Shown: positions 3,626 through 55,784 of the stretch, piece by piece
How the letters are laid out: every line of letters starts with the position of its first letter
Numbering within the stretch: the stretch's first letter is position 1
NCBI GenBank assembly: GCA_000320545.1
Contig: ADNK01001665.1
Location: forward strand, 1 to 64,000
Source of the DNA: Bigelowiella natans CCMP2755
Lineage: Eukaryota; Protista; Cercozoa
Direction of reading: 5' to 3'
Length of the DNA stretch: 64,000 nt
Translations under genes and position numbers: made by a program
Notes under the pieces: generated by a model
What the model saw: the letters and a program-made list of their open reading frames with translations, nothing else
What the model was told of the DNA's origin: nothing
Database searches by the model: none

Positions 3626-3675
<50 letters not shown>

Positions 3676-5130: not shown

Positions 5131-6344
5131 GCTCTCCTGTTCTACTCTGTCTGTCCTGCTCTAGACAATTTTCGTGGTAGCCAGCGCCTGGTATCGGTAT
5201 GGTGCGCTACTGGGGAGAGAGACGGGAGGAGGGGGAGGGTTGGCCAGGCCTCTGATAATTAGCGAACGCCTCTGCGAATGGAAAAATTGCTCTTCTCTCG
5301 GGGTTCTGATCGTGCAGTTCGGCTCCGTCCCTCAGTGGTGTGTGGCGTCCAGCTTCCTGTGCAGGAACGATCCGGGAGGATTCTCGAGAATTCCTTCAGA
5401 AAATGCACATCACAGAGATCCTTAGAGATCGCTTGGCTCCTTCTAGAGATCTCCAGAGATTCTAGGAGAAAAATGCTTAAAAAAAACGGATGGAACACCG
5501 GTTTTGGCGGGAAGCAGAAGCAGTTCGCTCCCCTGCATCAATGATGATCCTTTCAGAAGTTCGGTGGCCAATGTTCTCAAACATGTGACACTTTTGTGAC
5601 TGAGAGCTCGGCGAACATCACATCAGGTGTGGCTTTCACCTGGACGTGCAGACGTTTGTCGCGCCTGGTGAAGAAACAACAAGTGAATGAATCACTGCAT
5701 TCGTGGCGGGGCATTTTTTCAAAATGTTTTTTCAAAATGAAAAGCAAAGCTTTTGGGAACTGGGAGAGGTTCTCACGAGTGCAAAAGATTGCGCGTTTGC
5801 CTCATGCGCCGGAGTGTCTGTCTTTTTCCTGCGTGTCTGTGGTCGCCACACATTGCAACAAGCACATGCAGTTTGGTGCATCGCGTGCACTCGCCAGACG
5901 TGTGCAACATCAATGCATCACAAGGGTGCTCTTTCCTTGTCATCTACTGTTGTGTGTGTGTGTGTGTGTGTGAGATGCAACCCACACACAACACGGTCCA
6001 CAAAGAAGTGTCAAATACGCAAGAAACACGTGCATGTTTACAAACGTCCTTAGTCTCTAACTTGCATGTCTTGGTCTCTAATGTGCATTGAATGCGAACG
6101 CGACAGAACGCAATGCAGGTCCTGCTAGCCTGTCGTAAGTGGGTGGTGCAACTATGATGGAAACACAGATGATGTACTGCGGCTTTGCAGCACATAATCT
6201 GTGTATGTGGTGCTGGCATTGCCGGTGCTCGACACGCCCGTCTTCACACATGGTGCTACTTTGTTTAGAAAAATTGACTTGCGCAAAACAAATTGCATGT
6301 TTGCGTAGCTGGTCATTACACACGCAACCGAACTTTCGCATATC

Positions 6345-8429: not shown

Positions 8430-11857
<3,428 letters not shown>

Positions 11858-13524: not shown

Positions 13525-15564
13525 TCCACGCGTGCGGCGGCGGCGGCCATGCGAGCTGAACACAATTTGGACGTTATTTCCACGAAGTATTTCCGGATCA
13601 AATATGTCTCTCGTGTGGCTTTCCTTTTCAATGCGACGAGCAAGAGCGGGAACGTCGCACTTCAGTATTTATTATTTAGTAGTTTTACGGATGGAATTTG
13701 TATTTTACTTTAAAAATCGATTTTTAGGATGTTTTCCGGTTGAGGGAATGACAGGCCTCTTTCGTCATCGAGCATTCACATTCCATCCCCACACCCACTC
13801 GTGTCCGAACCTGCTTCAGTACAGCGCTCATGGCTGCTGATGCTGCAGTTTAGTATGTGCGTCCCTCTCTGAAGCCAAGCGTATCCTTACCTTGAAAGAG
13901 ACGTGATGACGACCAAACAGCACCCTGCAGCACTTCTCCTCTTGCTCTGTCTACCTGCTCTTGGAACGGGAGAAGGAGAAGGAAGAAAAGCTTGCGATGT
14001 TGGAGCCTGCAAGCCTTGCCAGGCCTTTCCAACTCTGAATCGGGATTCCTCGGTAATTTGAGTGATATATGTATTCAAGCACATCTCTGAGTTTTTGTAG
14101 CTTGTTTGCGGACGTAATCAAACTTGACGTCATCACAAGTAACCACTGTCGCCATCGTCGCGCATTATCACTGGATCATTTCTTGTCTGCCTGTCAGAAA
14201 CCGTGTGTAGGATACAGACAAGCGTTGAACTGTACCTTGATGCAAAGCGATGGGACTGCAATCGAGAAGTAAATTAATATTTGAAAATAGCCGTAAGAAC
14301 GGGTTGAAATAATTCGATTTCCGCAAACATAGGATTACAGAGTACGTGCAATGTAACATCAAGTCAGCAGAACAGACAGAACTTGATGAAAGCGATAATT
14401 ATTTCTGGTACTTTGAGGTAATAAGTCACGATGATGCCCCAAGATAGAACCTACTTGAACAAGGAGAGAATTGAGAACAGCTCACTGCATTTACTCTGAC
14501 TGTTCACAATTTCATACAATTAGGTCGCAATGACTCTCCTACTTGCCACGAGCGCGTATGTATTTTTTTATGCTCACGTTTTCGATTGAACTGAAGCCAA
14601 GTTGTCGCAACACCTTACATAGTACTAAACACGCTGCCTTCAGGTATATTGTAAGAAGGCGAAAGAGAGTGAGTCAAAAAATTCGAGAAGCAAGGTTCTC
14701 GAAAATGGTCAACGACTAAAGCGATTCAATCAAAATCTCAACTAAGCGATTTTAGATATCATATCGTTTCATTATGATAACGCAGTACTGGAGTATATTA
14801 ACGTAGCATGTAGGTCACTCCGGTACAAAGCTTACATATGTACGACTCTTTAACTTGTCGTAGAAATGAAATAGTAATTTTGACTTACATGCACATTAAT
14901 TATTGCAAGACAGAATACTCAGCACGCCCATATGCGTACCATCGCATATATACGATTCTAAATATGATTTGTAAGGCGTGTGGTATAGTGCGGCCCGATC
15001 TCGTACATAGCTACTACCTAGTAACTTTAAAGGTTTACGAATTGCGATGTCTAGATGTCTATTTGGTACCAACTATCGAAGGGGATATTCTTAGAAATAC
15101 TTAGCATGAATGATGCCAGCACCGTCTGTGCATATGTGCTAGCTGCTAGCTGCACGTCATACGAATGCATGCCGTTTCATGATTTTTATCACAAGAGTAG
15201 TAGGGGAGATGTAAGCATGCAAATAAATAAGAATGCAATCGATATGTTATTCTATTATATTATCGCACACTATCTTCAGTGCTGTAGCCGCCGCTTTACA
15301 ATTGCTATTGAACTTTGCAGGTGCGTAGCGCGATTGCTTTTGACGCGCGCTCGCAAAAGCACGCGCAAACATGTCAGTTTGATGCAAAGCACTCAGGCTC
15401 TGGGCTGCTCGCGGCGGCCGCAATGCTTGCCTGATTGCCCGGTTCTTATTTAACCAGTGCGGAAACAACCCGCGTTACAAACTGGCGTATAATCCGGATT
15501 ACAGTCGCAAACCGTGTCGAACAGTGCCATGTTAAGCTGTTTTTAAGTGGCCGAAATTGTGCTG

Positions 15565-16743
15565 TTAATTGAGCAAATGGGATCTAAGCAGGCAAAACCG
15601 CGGCTGTTGTGCGCTGTTACCTTTGAGATTCGCCCCTATTTCGAACAGCTTCATCTTCGGGTGCGGTCGAATTACCATGCTCTGGTGTGCGATGACCGTG
15701 TCCTCAAGCTGGTAGTGACCCAAGACCCATGAAGTGAAGCCGGGTTGGCTAGCCTGACCTGATTTTGCAAGAAAAAAGTCCTTGCTGAAACAGCTGTAAG
15801 CAAACGCGGCGAAGAATCTTCGGCACATCTTTGCTGTGATTCCGGGCAGCATCGGGCAAGCTTTTCTAAGGATGTTTCCCCAGTGTGTGCTAAACTTTCC
15901 ATTGATTTCCACGTTTGAAAGGTGCCGGACGCTCCAGCGCTTTCTCACTAGCGTCAAGGCTCGCTCGATTAGCCAGTACGGGGCAAGAAAGGGCCTGTCC
16001 CTGCACTGGTGGTGCTCTGTTTTCATCGTGCCACGTTTCGCGAATCTACTCTGACACCCCCAAAACGAGCCATGCTCTTGCTGGTTGTTGAGCTTGGCCG
16101 AGAATCGTCCCACCTTGACAATTTCGATGGGCCGCAATCCTGTCGTTACCAGAAGAGCTGGACACAGCAGGTTGGGGTCCGAGCTTGTCAAGCACTGCAA
16201 TGCCTGTCGCACCACAGCGTCCGCGTTCGACACCACGATGGTGTTCATGGCACCACGTCGCCTTCTGTCATTCGCATCTGATCTGATGTCGTGGTGCTCC
16301 TTCCTAGTCAGAGCGATGCTCTTCAGGTGCTCGCATGGAAGAGGGTCGTCCAGCTGTGCAAGCCTGGCCTTGAACCTGGATGACATGACGGAAAGGGATT
16401 TCACGTTCGTGTGATGCTGCCTGAAAATGCCGACAATCTTGGCTGGGGTGTGCTCTCTCCAGTTGGCTGCTGTCGCTAGTTTTGTCCCTTTCAAATCGAG
16501 GATGGGCATGACCTTCACATCAGCTTGATTCTCCTTGGTGGTGGAGATCTTCTTGTTTTCTGCTGCATCGCCTGTGTTGACAAGGAGGATGCCGCTCGAG
16601 GGTGGCAACTGAATGGCAGACTTCTGGCGCTCCTTCCGACCGGATGGGACACGAGACTTCAGGCGTGTTTTTTGGGAGGTGCTCCGTGGCACACGAGATT
16701 GGAGTTTTCGAGACATGCTTTGAGCTGTGCCCTGCATTTTCAT
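15565..16743 (-). pseudogene. Protelomerase/telomere-resolvase-like tyrosine recombinase; catalytic Tyr position reads His
   Basis: Motifs ALLVTTGLRPIEI, FAKRG, EING, KMCRRFFAAFAY and SWVLGH...TVIAHQS follow the TelN/ResT-like order. The expected nucleophile codon is CAC (15685-15687), one T>C change from TAC. Confidence 0.75.
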
Positions 16744-16772
16744 TTTGTCGTCTTGCGCACAAAAACAAAGAG

Positions 16773-19187
16773 ATGACCCCTTGCAGCGATGATGTGCGAA
16801 AAGATGTGGCAACTCGGCCATCTGGAGGGCAACCGCCTGAGTCCATTGCAGCGGCACTTGGCATCCCCGTGCGGACAATCCATCGCATTCGACGTGATTG
16901 CATTCGGCAAGGGTAGCGCTTCATCGCCCTCCCCCTCGAGCGAAAGTTCCGAAAAAAATTTCCCACGAACAGCTCTTGCTTCTCAGCGAAATCGTGAAGG
17001 AAAGCCCCAAAATGACATTGGCCGAGCTCAGGGCACAGGCGGTGGCCAGTCGCACATTCGAGTCCACCAACACTGCCCCCCATCAAGCCACGATGTGCCG
17101 ACGTCTTCGGAAAGTCGTCTTCCGATGGCAGAAACCGCGATGCTCAGATCCAAGGGCAAAGCGTGGCCGGGTGCGCTTCGAGAGATGCTGCTTCCGAAAG
17201 GCTCAGCAGAATGGACTGGACCCGGACGGCAAAATCCTGTCAATGGACGAGAGCAACTTTTGCTACGAGCAGGCAACGAGGGCGTGGGGCACCATGCACA
17301 AGCCTGCTGTTCTGGAGAAGCCCAAAGGGAAAGCAATGCGTGGGACCCTTTTCGCCACGATTGGGTTTTCGACCGCAGGTGGAGAGTCGAAGGCGTTCAT
17401 CCACTGGCTCCTTGTGCCCCCCCGCAAATCCTGCGCCCCTCTTCCAGACCGCATCCAGGACCACGAGACAACCGATCCTGCTTCAGAGAGGGCAGCCCCA
17501 AAGCAGAAGTGCACGGCGGCCTTTGTCAATGGGATCACTTCCGAGGGACTGAAACGAGGGCTGAAAGAGCTCAGAATCCGGTCTCCAGCCACATCCACCG
17601 CCTCAATGCGAGAAGTTCTTCTCCGCGTGGGCCGAAATGGCTCGAAGACGAACGAGCTTCGCATGAGAAAGCGCGGGCGACCAAATGCTGGAGGTGTGGT
17701 CGTCCCGCCCACAGGAGACGCCTGTGTGGTCTCTGAGCACCTGCACGAAGGCCTTGGTGCGTGCCTTGATGGGCAAGACCTGCACGCTGGAGACCAGATG
17801 GAGTGCAAATGCTCGGCAGATCTCGGGATCAAGGGCTGTCCTGACGGTGGCAAGCGTGAATTCAGACCAGCTGTTCGGGATGTGACCCTCATGTGGGACA
17901 ACGCTCCGTCTCACCTGCCAACGACGTCAAACACCAGTGTTTCACCTTTTGCAAAGTGGTGCCAAGACAAGCTTGGTCTTCGTGGTCTGATGATGCAAAC
18001 ACCGCCTTGCTCACCCTGGTTCAACCCAGTCAAGCTCTTCTTCGCATGCGTCAAGCAATGCTGCCGGAAATTCGCTCCCCCCGATGCTCCGGCACTTCTC
18101 CAGCGCATCAGGGAAGCCACTGCGAAGGTCTCTGGGGTCATGATCCAAAACTGGTTCAAGAAGTGTGGCTTCAAAGTGGGCGCAGAAAAGGAGCCCGATG
18201 TGGACCCGAACGAGGGCGTTGAAGACAGGTGCAGCCTTCCTAGGCGAGCACGCTTTCAGCGGAGGGAGCACGTCGCTTGCGCCGACTCATCGGGAAAGAT
18301 CCGCCGTGAGAAGAAAAGTGGCCACACGAGGTGGACCCGCTGCGACGACGATGGCAAAATCACTGGGACGCTGCAAAACGCTGTCTGTTGCAAAGAGGTC
18401 TGGCGTGCGCAGACGATCTGGCCGGCGAATCCAGAGCTGCCCGGAGCCAGACAATGGCAAAGCCCCTCGATGGGTTGGCTTGTCACCCGAGCCGAGTGCT
18501 GTCGTGCACGCCGACTGCTCACAACCACACGGTGAAGGTGGCATGTCCCAGGTGGAGCGTGTTGCAGATGAAAGAACGACACGACCTGGTGCAGAGCACC
18601 TTTTGAAGTGGCGGGACTGCGATGACGCGCAATCAGTGCCTGAGGGGCGAATCCATGGTCTGGAGGCATTGCTAGACGGGTTTGACCATGGCCGCGTTGA
18701 TGAGGAGGCCAAAATCCAAAAAAACAAAAAAGCGTCAGCTTCGTCTAGCTCTAGCTCCTCTTGCATCCCGAGCAGAGCAGTCGAGGTTGGTGATGTGGTT
18801 GCGATGAAGTCTCCCTCAAGTGCACCGGAACCCTTCCACGTCGCAAAGGTGTTGAGCGCAAGGGGCGGCTTCATGAGCCTTCATTGGTGGAGCTCAAAAA
18901 AGATCGACGGCACCCACTCGCCCGATTTTCGAATCCCTCAGGGTGGTCCTGGGAAGGGTCACGGAGGGCCCTGCACCCAATCAAACGTCAGTGCGGACAC
19001 TGTCATCGACCGAATCGCAAAGCTTCAGGGCAAATCTCGAGGCAAAATCCCCTCGTCGCAACTGAAAGAAATCCTCAAGCTGGTGCGTGCGCAGAGGACA
19101 CAAAAGAGGCGCAGGCAAGCCACATCCTGGGACAAGGCCTCAAAAGTGAGCGCTCCCCCCATTGGCACACCCTGTGTCCCACCCTGA
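16773..19187 (+). pseudogene. IS630/Tc1/mariner-superfamily DDE transposase with frameshifts, an internal insertion and a C-terminal chromodomain-like extension
   Basis: N-terminal HTH (MTPCSDDVRK...IAAALGIPVRTIHRIRR), frameshift near 16910, second HTH (MTLAELR...ATMCRRL), SMDESNF (D at 17246), MWDNAPSH (D at 17897), PPCSPWFNPVK (canonical PPYSPxxNPIE). A second frameshift near 18370 leads into a chromodomain-like segment at 18540-18680. Confidence 0.82.
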
Positions 19188-19269
19188 CCAGAGCGCTTCT
19201 CAATGAGCTCTCTGCAAGCCTGCAAAACAAAATGAAAAAAAAACGGCTGTCGTTCCTCTGAGTGAGTTT

Positions 19270-19677
19270 CTTGAGTGGCTTGAGTGGCCCACTTTTCTGC
19301 CTGGCTTCCAATGCGCGCTGCTGCGAGATTTCTTGTCTTTTTTTTTTTCAAATGAATTCAAAATGTGCAAAAACTCAACCACTCCGCCACTCAGAAGTGT
19401 GCTTTGGGCTGCTGGAGGCGCAAAAAATGCCGTCACGTGACAAAAAAATGACGTCGCTTCTCTGAGCTTGGTGGCTTGAGTGGCTTGAGTGGCTTGAGTG
19501 GCCCACTTTTCTACCTGGCTTCCAATGCGCGCTGCTGCGAGATTTTTCATCTTTTTTTTTTTCTGACAAATTCAAAATGTGTGAAAACTCAACCACTCCG
19601 CCACTCAGAAATGTGCTTTGGGGCGCTGGAGGCGCAAAAATGCCGTCACGTGATGAAAAATGACGTCGCTTCTCTGA
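19270..19677 (+). repeat. Tandem direct repeat of about 195 bp (19270-19465 and 19484-19677), each copy headed by CTTGAGTGG 9-mers
   Basis: Direct comparison of the two copies shows near identity. It lies between the convergent 3' ends of the transposase and helicase genes. Confidence 0.92.
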
Positions 19678-22155
19678 AGGAGAGCGCCCTTTTCATTGCC
19701 GACCCAGTCCAGAAGCTCACTTTCGCTTCTGCTTGCCGCTTTCTTTTGGTTCCCACCTCGTTCCCTTCGTCTTCCAACTCCATGGCCGGACAGCAATGCG
19801 GGTCTTGCAGCAGCATCCCCTTGATGACCATGACTTTTCTCCGGTTCTTCCTGTCGCAGTGATCCCCACACTTCGCCTTTGTGCAGTGCTTGCTGCACGT
19901 CTTGCAGATGTTTTGAGAGACGTGGGTGTGCCCGGCTTTCTTGATCTCGTCCATGTCCGAATTGCTGACATTCATCCCTTGTCCAACATTGCACTTCTTG
20001 GCCATGAAGCTGGTGAACGCGCTGTTGAAGTCCTCCAATGTCGTGACCGCGCCTTCTTTGTGCACCACCTGGTTGCTTTCTAGAAACTCTTGCATCTTGT
20101 TGACTTTCTTCGAAAAGTTCAGTCTGGACTGGTGGAAGGATTTGGGGACCATGTCCCAGATTTCCCGGCCGTTGCTGGCCTTTGGCTGGGTTTTGTGCGC
20201 CTTGATGCACCGGATCATCACGCGGGCATGCTGGTCGCTGTTCACGATGCGATCCATGATGTTGGTGTCCCTTGACATCGTGTTCGTGTCGAAATGGAAG
20301 ATCACAAGTCTCCTCGCGAGGGCACCTGACGTGTCCTTGTGGTTTGGGAAACAGTTGCCGATGCACATCGACGTCGGTGGCCAGTTTGCGCAGCGCGCCA
20401 GCTTGTTCTTCTGGGCGATGTGCACCTCCTCTCCTGATGCAACACTTTGGAAGTCGGCCTGCGGCATGTGTTTGTGGAACTTCTTGTGGTCTAGATCCAT
20501 CACCATGTTGCACCTCTTTTCCTGGAGTGTCTCGAGGCCAAAGACTTGCTCCTTGCCAAAGGTGCCGACGGTGCCTTTGGGGAACATGGCTTTGATCATC
20601 TCCCCCACCGTGCTTTTTCCCGTGTTCGCCACGCCTTTGATGTGCGGAACGCATTGCCACCTGTCGTGCCGTGCGGTGAAGAACAGCCGGCCAACGAATG
20701 TCTCGAACCATCTGATCACATCGTTGAGCTTCTCCTGGACCCCCTCGTGTCTGGCCCCCCACTGCCAACTTGGGCTTGCGCTGTGGCTGCGTTCGGACGA
20801 GGGCATCCCAGTCGTCCGTGTGGTGGGCACGAGGCGTCTGTGAGCCACCCTCGTCCCAGTGCCCTGCAAACGTCTTCGGGAACTTTCTCTCGTGGTGGTG
20901 GCATGTCATGGGCGGCTTCTTGCACTCCGACCAGGGGATGAAGACTGTCGTCTCCATGTCAAAGCACCGCCCGTCCGTGAACGAGATGGTTCTCGTGCTC
21001 ATTTCCGATTCCAGGACAAAGTCGAAGCGTGGATGGGACGTGTTCTTCATCCAGTCATTCAGAGACTTGACGGGGATGTTTCCGTTTTGAACAAAACCAT
21101 GCTTCAGCGCAATCTTGCAGTGATCCTCGTGCGAGCGGAGAACCGTGTGCACCCCGGGGATGGACTTGTGCGGGGCCATGACGTTGCCGTCCTGTCGCCT
21201 GAGTCCAAGTTTGTGGGCCTCGCTCCACAGAATGCACGTCGCCCGCGTCAGCGGCTCATCGATTTCATGCTTCGCCTGTGGACCCCAGCAGAATTCCCAG
21301 TCGGCAGCAGTCGGAGTCATGGGTTTCTCGATGAGCTTGAGGTCGAGACGCGTCTTGCGCTTGATGAAAACTTCCGCGCCGCGAAGAAATTCGCTCGGCA
21401 GGGGGGTCAAGGGGGTCGTCCCCTCGAGCATGACGCCGTCATGACATGGAGCCCCAACACGCCGCCCTTTCCTCGTCGCACATTCCGTGAGAGCACTCAT
21501 CGCCTGGACCTCATGGCTCTGCCAGACCCTCGAAATGAAGCAGCCTTTTTTGTTGGTTTTCTTGTTGTCGGCCTCCACCGCCTTCCAGATGCTTTTGTGT
21601 CGCTTCATTTTCCGCAAGGTCTTGAAGATCTGCCCCATCTCGGTCTCGAGTCGGGCCAGAATGGGGACTGAAGTCGTGCAACGCTTCCCCTCGTCGCGGT
21701 CACAGAAGTCGAAATCTTTCTCGACGAACTTTCCCTCGCCACGCTTCGATTCCAGGTGGGAGCCTCCATGCATCACGATGAGAAACATCCGCTTGCGCTG
21801 CCCGCGAGATTTTGGGTGACGGTGCGTTCAGCTTTCCCACCTCGTTGAGACAATTTTCCCGGTGGCTTGCGTGAAGTGCCAGTGCTGACACGCTCTCTTT
21901 CCACTCGGGTCTCCTCCGCAAAATCTCCCGCAAGATGGTGGGTGCGCAGTTGACGATGTCCACGTCGTTGCAAAGAGAGCCACAGATGAGCCGCCTGATC
22001 TGCGAGGGGAGGCTCTGCATGCGTCCTCCGTGCACCCTGCCCTCAGGAAAACCTTCCGAGACCTTGTGCTTGGCCACCAGCCTTGTGGCGCATTTCTTCT
22101 TCTTCAATTGTTGCTTCAAGTCGAGAACTGAGGAGTCGTGGGCGGGTTGCATCAT
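19646..22155 (-). pseudogene. TVpol (PolA-related) plus D5-like SF3 helicase fusion, split over three frames
   Basis: GRVHGGRMQSLPSQIRRLI...DVDIVNCAPTIL (21700-22155), FLIVMHGG...FISRVWQSHE...CHDGVML (21400-21790), then GRL..DRWQ..HIKGVANTGKST (Walker A 20612-20635), DL, FQSVASGEEVHIAQKNK, GNCFPNHKDTSGALARRLVIF. This is the TVpol-SF3 helicase architecture known from virophages and Polinton-like viruses. Confidence 0.82.
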
Positions 22156-22159
22156 GACC

Positions 22160-23524
22160 CCAGAAAGGATCCGACGGCAATTTGATGTCGGTGATGTTCA
22201 CGCGGTTGCCCGTGGCTTTGCACATGAACTGAGTCGAAAACTTCACTGTGGTCGTCGTGCCGTTGTCGCAATCCCTTGCGGGAAGGTGCTGGCTGGCGCG
22301 CAACGCCGCCGATTCGACTTGCACGATCACCTGCTGCATGTCGACGTCTGCACAGGCGCTGGAGTTGCCCGCCAGAAGCTCCCGGATGCGTGCTCTCTCC
22401 TCAGTGCAACCAGGCGTCGCAGGGTTGGAAAACGTGGTTTGCGGGACATGTGACATCACGACATCAAGGCCGCCCGTAGCGTTTGGGTCAAACTCAAAGA
22501 CAATTTCGACATCGCACCCGTTCGAGCCCACGATTTTCCGGGCGTGGGGGAGCCCCTCGTTGCGGCTGTCGTTCAGTGCGGCCAGCCGCTCGGCCTCATT
22601 GGCGAACATGAATGAGCGGCATGTCATGTCGGTGAGTGGCGAGCGCGTCAGCATCACCCCGGAGGTGCACCGGGTTCCTACTCTCTCATCGACACAAGAC
22701 GACCCATTGGACCCGAAGACCATTTGATGTGAGGCGTTGTGGAAAATTCGGTTGCATGGCGGGTGCATTGCAACGTTTGGGGTTGAGCCTTCGGTGGTGT
22801 GCTTGCCGTTCACCATGCCAATTTTGAAGCTAACACCCCCCCAGCTGTCCTGCCCACGTAGCCTTTCCTCCGGACATTCGCATCTGTTGAGCGGTTCGTC
22901 GAGAAGCGGGCATTGGCCTTCAGTGGTCTCGCCCGAGGATGCGTTGACGGGTGCACCAAACGAGTTGGAGAAGACCTTGCAAGGCAACTTCGACTCCTGA
23001 AAGACACATCCGATGTCCTGACCCAGCTTCACCACTGGGTCGAGCAGTGTGTCGTTGAACAGAGCACCCTTGGACAGACACAACAGCAGGGTGTCGGAAC
23101 CAGATCCTTGCCTGTGCTCGAAGGCTCGACTCCCTGGTGCGATTCCGACCCACCATTCGCACATGTCAGGACACTTCGACGAGCCCGACGGGCTCGCGGC
23201 GTTCCTGCATTCGAACCGCGAGTGTCCACCAAAAGGATCGGGAATGCAGTCCCCCACGGCGAATGCACGTGTCACGGCACCCCTGCAGTCATCACTGGAT
23301 GTGCACAGCCAAGTGCGGTTGAGGTCGCAGTCGGCCATCGCTGAGCCTGTCGAAGCACAGTCCCAGCATGTGCCGCTGGTCGCACCGCAACTTTCACCCG
23401 TTTTTCGACGACACGTTGAGTCAGAGCATTGAATCACACAAAAGTCTTGCGTCTGTTGCGCCCGAACCGGCTGCTGAGCCAGAGCCAGAGCCAGGAGAAC
23501 AGCAAGCACTTGCTGGGTAGCCAT
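22160..23524 (-). CDS. Intronless secreted Cys-rich protein of unknown function (element cargo)
   Basis: Signal-peptide-like MATQQVLAVLLALALAQQPVRA, a Cys-rich N-terminal module and several N-x-S/T sites. The probable ancestral stop TAG now reads TGG (22160-22162), 4 nt before the TVpol ATG. Confidence 0.65.
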
Positions 23525-23897
23525 CAGTCTGATGGAAGCTTCGCCGAAATTCCGCAAGAAAAAAAAATGTTTCAAAGCGGCTCAGAACGAAGAATGGCAG
23601 CCGGTTTGCCCTCGCAAGTCCTCTTCGATGCTCGTTTGGGTGGAGCTGCAACTGAACTTTGTGTTGTTGCGATTCTCCGGCTAAGACATCGGGATGTTTC
23701 ACTTCCCCGTTTGCGACAGGCCATTTTGTCCCAAAACATTTGCAGATGATGCCATGTCAAAATTTGCATTGAAATGATCATTACGTGCTCCTGAAAAAGC
23801 ACCGAGAAGATGATTGTACGACGAGAAAAACGAAGAATTTGTCGGCTCGAACAAAAGTGGCGGGGACTTTTTGGCCAAATTCAGCATCCGTCTTTTC

Positions 23898-23952
23898 GAA
23901 AATCCAGACAGTGGTGTTGAGAAAATCCAGACAGTGTGAGAAAATCCAGACA
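23898..23952 (+). repeat. Three direct copies of GAAAATCCAGACA
   Basis: Seen at 23898-23910, 23921-23933 and 23940-23952 in the divergent intergenic gap of the element. Confidence 0.85.
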
Positions 23953-24237
23953 AAAATGGCGGGAGCTTCAGAAAAGCGCTCAATGGCTCCCCCACGTCTG
24001 CCCAACCTGGGTGTCCGTTGGCCCAATTTGGACAGAATCATCCCCTCCAACGCCCAAGACAAGCCTTTTCTTCGCTGTGGAAAACGCAAACGGTTCAGAG
24101 CGCTGTGCTTTTTTCGACAATGCAAAACACTGCACTTTTCGCTTTGAAAAAGGCCTGACAAACTCCTTTCCCGCTTTGCAGACACTCCGAACACTTGGAA
24201 ATCTCGAACTAGGCATGGTACAAACCGAAATGAGGAG

Positions 24238-25369
24238 TTGGTTCACCCTGTGCGGTCAGAGAACCGGCCAAAACGAACTGCCAGCCCATGGCACGTGAAA
24301 GCTTTGCACGACTACTGCAGCTCCAACATCACATGTACAGAGGCTGCAGTGAAGCAGGGGAAATCCCCCCAGGCGTTTAATCATTGGTTGAAAAAAAAGG
24401 AAACAACCCCAGAGCGCAGGGACGGTCTCAGGAATGTTGCTAAAAACATCGATCTGGATGACGTGTCGATTGAGATCGATTTGGATGAGGTCTCAACTGA
24501 GACTGGAGATGAGGTTACTGGAACCAGCGACAACTTGCCCATCACCGCCAGTTCTACACGTGGAACAGGAATGGTTGTTGAGGAAGCTGGGGGGGGTAAC
24601 GTGAACTCTACCGATGCTGAAAATCGTAGAGGTACAACGGCAACGACAGGCTCTGCCGACCCCACTGAGATGGAAATCGAGGTAGTTCTCGACGATTCTG
24701 ACACTGAGGAATCAGAAATTGAGGTTGAGGTGAGTCTAGGCCAAGCTAGCAGCTCTGAGAGCGGTGTCAAAGAGCCCGACGTCCAGGAAGTGGACAGTCT
24801 ACAGGAAGGCGATCGGGCAGTGCACAGGAACATCGAGCATGTTGACGTTCTAAAAAAACACCGCAACGGAAAGGGGGGTTTTCACTACATCTGCCGACGA
24901 GCAGATGGCCACCAAGGTGCAAACTTTGGGCAAGCACCTTGCCAAAATCGAAGCGCCGTCTGAGCTGGTATCGTTTGAACACCATGGCGAAAAAACGGAT
25001 GACGTCGAAAAAATCAGAAAATGTGTTGCAGATCATTATCCCGGCCGTTACGCCGCCTTTGTCAGAGAGCAGAGAATGTTTGACCTTGAGCTGCGGCCGA
25101 AGGCCAAAATGAAACCTGGAAAAGTGTACCGCAGGGGCGACGTGACGCCGGCATGCTTCGCGAAGGCGCATGCCTTGGGCTGTGCTCTGGTCAGGGTCTA
25201 CCACCCAAACGACAAAAAGCTTAAGGACAGAGGCGGCTTGCCGAGCGCGACGGGCAAACAGAACCGCAGGCGGCACGGGCAGGAAAAGAGCTGGGCGCAG
25301 GGCGCCGTCGCGGCGAGCGAGAGGAAGGCCGAGAGCGTAGTAGAGAGCGCGCTGCAGCAGGCGCAATAG
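24238..25369 (+). pseudogene. HTH-like N-terminus, acidic linker, possible chromo-like segment and basic C-terminal domain (frameshift near 24910)
   Basis: ALHDYCSSNITCTEAAVKQGKSPQAFNHWLKKK resembles a psq/CENP-B-type HTH. A D/E-rich linker follows, then NIEHVDVLKKHRNGKGGFHYICRRADG, continuing in ORF 24905-25369. Intronless and partially TpA-depleted. Confidence 0.45.
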
Positions 25370-25938
25370 CTGGCTTGCTTTCAGCTTTACATTACTGTAA
25401 TTGGATGAGCTAGTGAGTATCGGGAAAATGCAATCATTTCATTACATCCATCTCACTCACCTGCATCACTCGCACACATTTGATCTAGTTGTTGCCCGAC
25501 ATAGCATGGATGCTTTTACATGCATGTAGTACATAATAGCAGAAATCAACAAATGCAATATAAGCACTGTAGCTGCTTTGCATAGCTACTGGACTATTAA
25601 AAAAAAAAAATAATGTCATTACATCCGTCTCATATTTGTTGCCCGCCGTGTTATTATGTATTGCTAGCATGCAATTCTAAACACATGTTCACCAAGCTAT
25701 GAATAAAGGCTGCAAATGTTCTCGATGCTAGCTATAACAAACATACAAGCATTACCATTATTGCATCAGCAAAATTGCAAATAATTTTGCAAGACTGCTC
25801 ATTCTGTGGTGGTATTTTTTTTTTTGTGTTTACCACCACATATTAACAGCTGCACTAAATGCGCTTATTTGCATTGTGCGACCCTACTGCCACTTGAGAG
25901 AAGTAGAGGTTATTGAGAGGAGGACTGCCGCAAGATGC

Positions 25939-34697: not shown

Positions 34698-35655
34698 TTG
34701 TGGTGAATAGGAACGTGCGATCGAAAGTTTTTTCAGTGATCCCCGAAGACTAAAAAAGAAGGCATACACGACCCACCCTCCAATCGAATCAAAAGTGCGA
34801 AAGAATAGATTTTTGTTGTTTGCAGTGCTATTTTTGACACAATATTGATCTCTACAGGAGACCAAAGTACGTTGCATGTTTCGGGCGCAGTTGTCAGGGA
34901 AGGTATAAATCGGTTTTGAATGGCGTATCGTCTCCCTCCAAATGAATTATTGTATGTTTCTTGTCAGGATGAAAAGGAAGCAACTAGTTCTTCTAAGCAG
35001 AAGAAAACTCCAAAGTTAACCGCCGTCGAGAAAGCCGTGGAGAAATTGATTAAAAAGGCAAAGTCTCAAGCAGAAATATATAAAACTTTGGGTTCTAAAT
35101 TCAAGCTTCGTGACGTTATGATGGCTGTAAACAAGATGAATGCTCGGATGGCAGCAGAAAGCCTAGCATCTGAGAGCCTTACAATATGTGAAAGCAACAA
35201 TGGGATCGTGCCAGTAGAAAATGCAACGCAATTGCGATGTGGACACTGGGCATGCAATGATTGCTGGGAATCTAATCTCCGATACAAAGCAAAATCTGGA
35301 AGAGAATGCATCAATTTTAGATGTCAATACGTCGTTTGTAAGAAGAGAAACTGTCGCCACAAATCCGACTTGGGTTGCTTCTGTCAGGAAGCCATTCCCC
35401 GGGAGATGTTCGTCAAGTTTCTCAAAACCGAGGAAGTCGGAAAGTACGACAAATGGATGGCTACGCAATACTCACTTGACAACAGAAGTACGATTACACA
35501 TTGCCCCCAGGCAGGATGTGGGTGGTGGCTAAAACCGAACCCATCCGAGTTGACCTCGCGTGCAACTTGCTTGTGTGGGAAAGTGTTCTGCTTCTCTTGC
35601 GGAAGAGCTCCTCACAACCCTGTTCCATGCTTCCAGTACGAGGTGTGCGCAGTCG

Positions 35656-35731
<76 letters not shown>

Positions 35732-36779
35732 GTTTGCCGTCTGGTGTCTGTTTTTGAAATAAGGGACTCGGTTTTCCAAAGCTGACTCCGACCCCATCGC
35801 CATTTTCCAGCTATTGACAACGATCTCCCTTTCTCTTTTAAAACATCCGTAGGATTTCCAGGAAAGAGGAAAACCGATGTATCTGGAGAAACTTTGGCTA
35901 GAGAGCAGCACACTTCCATGCCCGAAGTGCAAAGCTCCGATCGAAAAGAATAAAGCGTGTTTACACATGACCTGCATTTGCACCTATGAGTTTTGCTGGG
36001 CGTGCGGGCAGAAATGGCAAGGTGTCGGCCATGGATTCTACAATTGCCCAAAGTATAAAAAGAACGAGGACGCTAAGACAAGGGATGAGGACCAGCAGAG
36101 AGCTATCCGGGAACTGAGTAAGTTCAAGTGGTATCAACGGCAAATGGATGTCACGAGAAAGGAAATGGAGGAAGCTCAGAAGAGAAAAGCTGAATGGGAG
36201 AAGGAAATGGAAGATAAGACCAATAGCTACCGCGACTATGCGTTCGTATTCGATGCTCTCGATACGTTTTTGCTCGCGAAGGAACAGATGCTGAACTTGA
36301 GCATTATTGCTTTCTATTTCCAAGGCAAAAATATCGAATGGAGATGCCCGTCATGCACGTTTGCCAATGGATACGGTGAAGTGTGCCAAATGTGCAACAC
36401 GAAGAAGCCGAAAGAAAAGAAGTCAGATAGCGTAAAGGAGATGTTCGAGTTCCAACAGAGGATGATGGTCAAAGTTACTACATCGCTTAAAAAGTGCTTT
36501 GAAGATAAAACTCTGGACAACGTGCTCAAAGAGAAGAAAAACGTCCAAACGAAAGCTAACGCTTGCAGCAAATTTATACGGGAACTCGTTAGAGACGTCG
36601 AGTCTGGGAAATACACAGCATACATTCTTGAACAACCAGATGATTCCATTTCTGGATGGTTCTGCATTCGATGTGAACAGATGAACAAGTTCGACACGAT
36701 GATATGCAAATCTCCGGGATGTGAAGCCTGTCAAGTCCATGGAGAACCGGCATGCTTACGTTGCAATCCGAGGCAATAG
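33418..36779 (+). CDS. Ariadne-like RBR E3 ligase with a RanBP2-type zinc finger and a C-terminal Cys cluster
   Basis: RING1 (LRCGHWACNDCW), IBR (HCPQAGC...CLCGKVFCFSCGRAPHNPVPC), RING2 (CPKCKAPIEKNKACLHMTCICTYEFCWACG), WRCPSCTFAN...CQMC. Start approximate. Confidence 0.88.

Positions 36780-38732: not shown

Positions 38733-38818
<86 letters not shown>

Positions 38819-55737: not shown

Positions 55738-55784
<47 letters not shown>

Follow-up and report, generated by a model that had tools for sequence, protein, structure and literature searches.

TpA is nearly exhausted in an integrated virus-like element of Bigelowiella natans, probably through a neighbour-dependent mutation process to which CTAG is the most refractory site

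The window analysed here, i.e., the whole stretch of 64,000 nucleotides (64 kb) of contig ADNK01001665.1 of Bigelowiella natans CCMP2755, contains an island of about 10.1 kb that is rich in guanine plus cytosine (GC content 0.50-0.62, vs. ~0.40 in the flanks and ~0.42 for the whole 64 kb). By its gene content this island is a virus-like mobile element, and the dinucleotide TpA has almost disappeared from its central part. The comparison of the island with related copies that kept their TpA points to the conclusions that: (i) TpA has been converted into CpA or TpG; (ii) the conversion depends on the two bases flanking TpA; (iii) CTAG is the last context to be converted.

The features of the element are the following (strand given for genes and repeats):
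15307 to ~25400: GC-rich island of ~10.1 kb, predicted integrated virus-like mobile element in the B. natans nuclear genome
15307 to 16050: left tapering edge, in which about 1/3 of the reference TpA sites are converted
16050 to 24200: hypermutated core, TpA observed/expected 0.00-0.15 per kb, ~92% of the reference TpA sites converted
24200 to 25400: right edge of the GC island, TpA observed/expected climbing from 0.1 to ~0.55, i.e., near the level of unmutated relatives
15565 to 16878, minus strand: degraded copy of a tyrosine recombinase with a ResT/TelK-like catalytic domain (Pfam PF16684, E = 1e-10)
16789 to 19187, plus strand: degraded Tc1/mariner-type DDE transposase with helix-turn-helix (HTH) and chromodomain, matching in two frames its orthologue in the related contig L001
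19233 to 19677: tandem duplication of two ~213-bp units (86% identity), between the transposase and helicase genes
19605 to 22155, minus strand: D5/E1-like superfamily 3 helicase (primase-helicase) region (DUF5906 and PPV_E1_C in Pfam; DNA-primase families in PHROGs)
22043 to 23575, minus strand: homologue of a conserved Cys-rich protein of 565 amino acids (aa), 91% identical to the relative P0037
23898 to 23955, plus strand: three direct 16-nt repeats spaced by 19-23 nt, non-coding, near the right end of the core

The left end is defined by the alignments with three independent metagenome relatives (L001, L008 and L009), which all break at 15306/15307 with unrelated flanks beyond. The right end, at ~25400-25500, is approximate, composition (the drop in GC content and the return of a host-like TpA level) being its sole basis. 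A search for terminal repeats of the element, inverted or direct, gave none, and the segment 24200 to 25400 has neither a Pfam match nor a match to any relative locus compared. The window as a whole is eukaryote-like, with few long open reading frames (ORFs) and intron-rich, ORF-poor flanks, and no tRNA genes or Rfam matches were found in its 64 kb. ORFs are plentiful in all frames of the island because TAA and TAG have been erased. The helicase ORF is 99% identical to its best match in the representative library, P0042 (EukProt Bigelowiella_natans_P009342; jgi Bigna1 137348 aug1.38_g12056) and the region corresponds to B. natans gene model 137348. On this identity, with which the GC content and the intron-rich, ORF-poor flanks agree, the locus is assigned to the B. 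natans nuclear genome, where it probably lies on scaffold 38.

The genes of the element are degraded to various extents. The recombinase, 93-94% identical to P0001/P0002, has 25 nonsynonymous changes and, in the DNA alignment, one indel that is not a multiple of three, with no new in-frame stop. The transposase, whose L001 orthologue has 716 aa with HTH_Tnp_Tc3, DDE_3 and Chromo domains, has one frameshifting indel, one in-frame indel and 60 nonsynonymous changes, again with no new in-frame stop (DNA alignment). A small ORF of 69 aa has one frameshifting indel (DNA alignment), and the reading frame of the helicase region shifts within it. The homologue of the 565-aa protein is a 510-aa ORF in the window; it has no indel within the aligned part, and the homology stops short of the 3' end of the relatives. 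The AlphaFold model of the 565-aa protein, built on a 6-sequence alignment, is unusable (pLDDT 34). A tyrosine recombinase, a DDE-chromodomain transposase and a D5-like helicase are thus all present, i.e., the target is foreign DNA. Polinton-like viruses and virophages are characterized by a double jelly-roll major capsid protein, a penton and a packaging ATPase; family searches detected no capsid or ATPase family in any ORF of the element, so that it is best described as a virus-like mobile element.

Five related contigs were aligned with the window:
L001, Ocean Sampling Day assembly: covers 15307-19323
L008, JGI metagenome: covers 15306-19158
L009, JGI metagenome: covers 15306-16654
L030, same sample as L001: covers 22179-23540
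L032, Logan assembly: covers 22179-23660

L001, L008, L009 and L030 are 93-96% identical to the window and none is TA-poor; 19323-22179 and 23660-25400 are without an unmutated comparator. Among 29 other relatives the observed/expected ratio of TpA ranges from 0.42 to 0.78.

The base composition of 16201-23750 predicts ~356 TpA, while 17 are found (within 16305-23682), i.e., an observed/expected ratio of 0.05 vs. 0.80-0.83 in the host flanks. CpA (1.27) and TpG (1.37) are both raised in the depleted tract; ApA and TpT are also raised relative to base content (ApA 1.41). The TA-poor tract extends from ~16050 to 24200, slightly wider than the 16300-23700 of a preliminary description made from the DNA letters. 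In this tract Rho TpA is 0.00-0.15, far under the published cut-off, and the mean of Rho CpA and Rho TpG is 1.17-1.41 (the published combined measure may be computed otherwise). The host sequence before 15306 and beyond 25500 has an ordinary TpA level, i.e., there is no spill into the flanks.

The preliminary description had listed 17 surviving TpA, every one in a CTA/TAG context, and had proposed that such contexts are converted more slowly. The positions and contexts of all 17 are exact: 8 are CTAG, 7 are CTAC/GTAG and 2 are CTAA, and the remaining NTAN classes are empty. Over the rest of the 64-kb window 35.8% of TpA are in a CTA/TAG context and 3% in CTAG; given this host background, the probability of finding 17/17 survivors in CTA/TAG by chance is P = 2.6e-8. 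The tetramer table thus does not show survivors spread over the contexts in proportion to background. Within the aligned segments the survivors are also TpA in the references, and are thus retained rather than newly formed, with one exception at 16914/16915. There the TpA of the window stands opposite a CpG of L001, so that both bases differ. The possibility that survivors are new TpA formed from CAG by C>T is ruled out, all aligned survivors but one being TpA in the references.

The spectrum of differences is very narrow. The comparison with L001 gives 160 mismatches, of which 115 fall on a TpA of L001 as T>C (63) or A>G (52); the corresponding figures at reference TpA are 112/149 for L008, 41/59 for L030 and, for the more divergent L009, 38/88 (43%). 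The non-TpA differences between the near-identical copies amount to ~1% divergence and have an ordinary spectrum. In the core, 146 of the 159 reference TpA sites (L001 from 16050, plus L030) are changed. With ~92% converted against ~1% background, TpA sites would have changed at least two orders of magnitude faster than the rest of the sequence.

The direction of change was deduced from more distant homologues. At the columns where the window recombinase and P0002 differ, 21 homologues of 39-61% identity side with P0002 312 times and with the window 38 times; for the 565-aa protein, distant homologues side with P0037 67 times and with the window 7 times. The recombinase has 11 Tyr>His/Cys replacements at positions where the distant homologues keep Tyr. 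The 565-aa homologue also has 11 Tyr>His/Cys, and its window ORF contains no Tyr at all vs. 20 in P0037. As the distant homologues match the TA-rich copies, the sequences indicate that the window copy is the derived one and that the change is from TpA to CpA or TpG.

The process is blind to coding consequences. Conversion reaches 56/61 for TAN codons, 36/45 for NTA codons and 51/62 for TpA lying across codons; among the changed codons (n=180), 129 changes are nonsynonymous and 51 synonymous. Tyr and stop codons are not spared relative to the other codon phases, being hit equally or harder, and stops lying upstream have disappeared. These values refute selection, and the proposal of the preliminary description, i.e., a neighbour-dependent mutation and not codon or GC selection, holds: the change is almost only TA>CA/TG, in a derived copy. 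CA and TG outcomes are about equally frequent, and the choice of strand shows no coordinated runs (z = -1.5). Between the two units of the tandem duplication there are three CA-vs-TG differences and one TA-vs-TG difference, as expected if an ancestral TpA was resolved independently in each unit. Together with the lack of strand runs, these outcomes point to many separate hits on both strands.

The proper background for the effect of neighbours is the set of reference TpA sites in the core (the same 159 sites). Once the classes are pooled by strand complement, their fates are:
ATAA: retained 0, mutated 16
ATAC: retained 0, mutated 25
ATAG (/CTAT): retained 0, mutated 21
ATAT: retained 0, mutated 9
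CTAA (/TTAG): retained 1, mutated 9
CTAC (/GTAG): retained 5, mutated 24
CTAG: retained 6, mutated 2
GTAA (/TTAC): retained 1, mutated 16
GTAC: retained 0, mutated 19
TTAA: retained 0, mutated 5

CTAG is retained at 6/8 sites vs. 7/151 for all other contexts (Fisher, 2e-6). The test gives 1.5e-4 for any CTA/TAG vs. other contexts, and 0.015 when CTAG is removed from the CTA/TAG group. It must be noticed that the non-CTAG CTA/TAG sites are mutated too (52/58); a survivor set made only of CTA/TAG is thus the end state of a nearly saturated process and not an absolute protection.

The strand that was hit gives a second view of the same dependence (edited adenine in brackets): AT[A]C is preferred to GT[A]T (17:8), TT[A]C to GT[A]A (13:3) and TT[A]G to CT[A]A (7:1). 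At CTAC/GTAG the ratio of CT[A]C to GT[A]G is 11:12, a tie that is expected if C at -2 costs about the same as G at +1. Over the positions -3 to +3, the surroundings of edited and unedited adenines differ at -2 (p = 5e-4) and at +1 (p = 0.04) and nowhere else; all 142 edited adenines are preceded by T.

Per-context rates, which the preliminary description had proposed to draw from copy alignments, were estimated with a competing-risks model having multiplicative -2 and +1 terms. Compared with a context-free null, this model gives a likelihood-ratio chi-square of 54.2 (6 degrees of freedom, p = 7e-10), i.e., it is the better fit. At -2 it assigns relative rates of A 1, T 0.24, G 0.19 and C 0.08, and at +1 of T 1, C 0.35, A 0.14 and G 0.13. 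Both slow neighbours that had been named from the survivors, C at -2 and G at +1, are thus recovered, each with the lowest rate at its position. The strong favour of A (then T) at -2 is not visible from the survivors alone. Without any extra term the model predicts ~50% retention of CTAG (75% observed), so that the claim that CTAG is the most resistant context also stands. The footprint thus comprises four bases: a T is required at -1, and the change is faster with A (then T) at -2 and slower with C at -2 or G at +1. CTAG has slow neighbours on both strands and is therefore the last context to be converted, which produces the survivor pattern near saturation. Duplex stability or G:C clamping is rejected as the cause, since GTAC, which also has two G:C flanks, is retained at 0/19 sites vs. 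6/8 for CTAG.

At the left edge the conversion tapers off. By steps of 250 bp, the retained/mutated counts are 5/3, 9/4 and 7/4, then 2/9 and 2/12, and the fitted dose of the edge is 0.08 of that of the core. Within the left 750 bp, ATA/TAT sites are converted at 8/12 vs. 4/22 for the other contexts.

A partly mutated relative shows the same order. L007 (ENA ERZ4903326, 1216 nt; protein P0003) comes from another metagenome and is 58% identical, at the protein level, to the window recombinase. It has Tyr>His/Cys at 7 of 10 conserved Tyr columns and a TpA observed/expected ratio of 0.42; ATA/TAT, GTAC and Tyr codons have been lost. Its survivors are TTAA (8), CTAA (10), CTAC (6) and CTAG (3), with only 3 ATAN, vs. 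49% ATAN in ordinary relatives. This is the order predicted by the -2/+1 model, and the process has thus hit at least one other member of the element family, in B. natans or in another host. P0004/L033 was rejected as a hypermutated candidate, its few Tyr changes coming without the context pattern.

The phenomenon and the locus are already known. TpA>CpA/TpG hypermutation of integrated viral DNA has been described in B. natans by Mettrop et al. (bioRxiv 10.64898/2026.01.13.699255, 2026). In their mutation-accumulation lines, 231 of 302 nuclear mutations fall in an integrated nucleocytoplasmic large DNA virus (NCLDV, scaffold 10) and a virophage (scaffold 146). The rate is ~1000x background and only some lines are affected; almost all changes are A>G or T>C and are reported on TpA. 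These mutations are inherited at the DNA level and affect integrated sequences present once in the genome of vegetative lines, with an ongoing, line-dependent rate of ~1e-7 to 1e-6 per site per generation. Their genome survey gives 124 TpA-depleted clusters and 324 TA-poor genes, with an enrichment in DDE endonuclease and reverse transcriptase domains. Gene model 137348 of the present locus is in their Table S6 (TA-poor genes), and 137348 and its neighbour 137349 are in Tables S6/S8. They propose a defence by DNA adenine deamination, with an ADAT2-like candidate (Bn78255) having residues linked to DNA activity. Mettrop et al. do not go beyond the dinucleotide in their text and do not analyse the flanking context; the four-base footprint with CTAG as the refractory site and the edge taper thus appear to be new.

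Table S2 of Mettrop et al. offers an independent view of the context. A hand tally of scaffold 10 gives, for A>G, TAT 34, TAC 22, TAA 32 and TAG 3, and, for T>C, ATA 33, TTA 35, GTA 30 and CTA 17, with 5 others. The base following the edited A at the TpA hits (n=206) is thus T 67, A 67, C 52 and G 20. For G, 20 are observed vs. ~40 expected, as ~19% of sites would carry it (a rough normalisation on the host background, the region's own sites not being used). The published mutations thus support the effect of G at +1 and not a disfavour of A at +1. It must be noticed that four T>C of scaffold 10 are in ATG (3) or ATT (1), though the text puts all of them on TpA, and that CTA (17) and TAG (3) are unequal despite being strand complements.

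These results can be gathered in one scheme, which is held to be very probable: a host process restricted to TpA, with the four-base footprint described above, drove the central part of the element near completion after its integration. The virus-like element would first have integrated into the B. natans nuclear genome. The host process would then have converted TpA in the central 8 kb from T:A to C:G, i.e., by A>G on either strand, both strands being hit in many separate events. This would be the work of an enzyme active on nuclear DNA and guided to foreign sequence by some signal; the likeliest candidate is a TadA/ADAT2-like polynucleotide adenine deaminase, which would turn A into inosine, to be read as G. 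Several points weigh against this scheme. No enzyme is tied to the process, and from the sequence a lesion on A looks the same as one on T. The scheme does not account for how the target is recognised or why the ends of the element are spared. The copy alignment makes A a poor neighbour at +1, which the de novo table does not bear out, and -2 on one strand is the same base pair as +1 on the other, so that the two effects are only partly separable, by strand choice, over ~190 sites. In the 64-kb window no second copy of the element was found apart from the 213-bp tandem repeat, and the literature source is a preprint, before peer review.

A bolder version, which is considered unlikely although worth stating, is that the footprint is the recognition rule of a so far uncharacterised enzyme that edits chromosomal DNA, reads the neighbouring base pair and belongs to a eukaryotic defence against foreign DNA; or, alternatively, that CTAG is spared by a methylation mark. 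If true, the footprint could separate the ADAT2-like candidate from other deaminase or thymine-modifying candidates.

The nearest rival places the lesion on thymine: a TET/JBP-like or other enzyme would modify the T of TpA (e.g., into 5-hydroxymethyluracil), which would then be mispaired or misrepaired to C. Thymine-modifying dioxygenases occur in several protist lineages, a T>C change looks the same as A>G on the complementary strand, and the flanking effect sits on a base pair and touches both strands. Against this, the obligatory T before A and the short -2/+1 footprint fit the reading of an anticodon loop by TadA/ADAT, and direct evidence for a thymine lesion is lacking here, while an ADAT2 homologue with DNA-activity residues is reported by Mettrop et al.; a thymine lesion is thus distinctly unlikely. 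A chemical protection of CTAG, e.g., by site-specific methylation by a host or viral methyltransferase, ranks after it and is judged improbable, although the 6/8 retention of CTAG is far above that of every other context. Algal giant viruses carry many methyltransferases of short sites. Nevertheless, the -2 x +1 model, for which most of the data came from other contexts, by itself leads to ~50% retention of CTAG vs. 75% observed, the half-site contexts (CTAC/GTAG, CTAA/TTAG) are also partly spared, and G at +1 is scarce among de novo hits at CTA/TAG in general.

The two remaining rivals fare worse. An ADAR-like editing of the double-stranded RNA of the element, copied back into DNA, would give A>G on both strands, and ADARs prefer U before the edited A, a point that is also found in the discussion of Mettrop et al. 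However, ADARs tolerate A as well as U before the target and disfavour G there, whereas ApA shows no depletion here (1.41); a following G, which ADARs favour, slows the present process, family searches found no reverse transcriptase in the element, and the published mutations are heritable in DNA. With T at -1 obligatory and the change fixed in DNA, the features of ADAR hyperediting are not those observed, and this route is very improbable. Finally, differences of TA vs. CA/TG are also the signature of fungal repeat-induced point mutation (RIP) read backwards; the relatives could have gained TpA by a RIP-like C>T at CpA, or TpA avoidance could have been selected in the virus lineage. The distant homologues side with the TA-rich copies in both proteins (312:38 and 67:7) and conserved Tyr are replaced in the window. 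Moreover, the 29 other relatives are all far richer in TpA than the window (0.42-0.78), the changes are mostly nonsynonymous and upstream stops are lost. On these sequence comparisons reverse polarity and selection are refuted, their probability being practically nil.

Other observations concern the family of the element. In distant relatives from marine and freshwater metagenomes this recombinase is accompanied by genes for a VapE/D5 helicase, an HMG-box protein and an A32-like ATPase; the A32-like ATPase is found only in the more distant relatives (L002). The helicases of the distant relatives L002 and L004 have no match to that of the window, and no relative turned up in IMG/VR with P0002, the 510-aa ORF or alignment A1 as query. 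The alignments of L030 and L032 to the 565-aa gene both end at window position 22179, and L030 also differs upstream, with an XPA_C-domain gene (divergent parts: L030 1-748 and 2111-2501; L032 1485-2982). Either the element family is mosaic, or the window copy was rearranged or truncated at 22179. The contigs L001 and L008 both end in the tandem duplication at 19233-19677, a typical assembly break at a repeat. The three repeats at 23898-23955 could be an array of binding sites or a promoter element. A homologue of the 565-aa protein (38% identity) is present in an uncultured marine eukaryote (L031, TARA contig of 55.9 kb, gene at 10001-11689), where its only neighbours are ordinary genes of a eukaryote (CDC48, mitochondrial carrier, ABC1 kinase); this gene may be solitary or domesticated.

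Outside the element, another patch poor in TpA, a small one, lies at 5260-5945, with Rho TpA of 0.31-0.40 per kb and CpA/TpG raised up to 1.59. It includes one stretch of 467 bp without TpA, and its left side has a few TpA, with the contexts TTAG, CTAG, CTAG and TTAA. No protein family was found for the ORFs of this patch, which may be a short hypermutated fragment. At 34920-36779 (plus strand), two adjacent ORFs with IBR domains are probably exons of a host gene for an RBR-type E3 ubiquitin ligase; a homologue search with the first IBR exon ORF found nothing. Dinucleotide microsatellites are scattered in the host part (3630-3672, 9759-9808, 35658-35695, 38768-38817, 55738-55780 and others) and cross-match the microsatellite ends of unrelated metagenome contigs.

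The interest of the locus lies in its near saturation combined with the existence of unmutated copies, by which statistics of composition are replaced by the fate of each single site. A footprint of four bases in which CTAG is refractory is of the sort that narrows the search for an enzyme, and a taper at the edge without spill into the host constrains how the target is delimited. The process disables the genes of mobile elements wholesale, tyrosine and stop codons being erased. Compared with the case of Mettrop et al., the organism, the change and the kind of target (foreign integrated DNA) are the same. The -2/+1 dependence, the CTAG resistance, the edge taper and the polarisation of a copy against outgroups are absent from their text, and the present element is near saturation (0.05) while their actively mutating NCLDV region is at 0.45.

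Among known systems, APOBEC3 and ADAR in animals are also host deaminases that inactivate viral or repeat nucleic acids and leave a neighbour-dependent fingerprint. However, APOBEC3 edits C in single-stranded DNA, while ADAR edits A in double-stranded RNA with a looser 5' and an opposite 3' preference; neither gives a heritable, TpA-only A:T>G:C change in integrated DNA. TadA and ADAT2-ADAT3 may also be compared. The natural tRNA substrate of ADAT2/TadA has an invariant U before the target A, and that of bacterial TadA has C at +1, a favoured neighbour in the copy alignment too. These enzymes thus share with the process described here the change of A into inosine read as G, an invariant U/T directly 5' of the target and a short footprint, the likeness being one of footprint only. 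The natural enzymes act on a tRNA loop, and activity on chromosomal DNA is on record only for engineered TadA and, in reports cited by Mettrop et al., for ADAT2.

Another parallel is fungal RIP. Both processes act at the DNA level by transitions specific to a dinucleotide, inactivate invading or repeated DNA, taper at the borders and ignore coding. The chemistry is opposite: RIP changes CpA into TpA (C>T) and raises AT, whereas the B. natans process raises GC. Moreover, RIP needs duplicated sequence and a premeiotic stage, while the published B. natans case is single-copy and in vegetative lines. The TpA-directed hypermutation is thus a mirror image of fungal RIP, and may be a deaminase-based genome defence outside animals and fungi.

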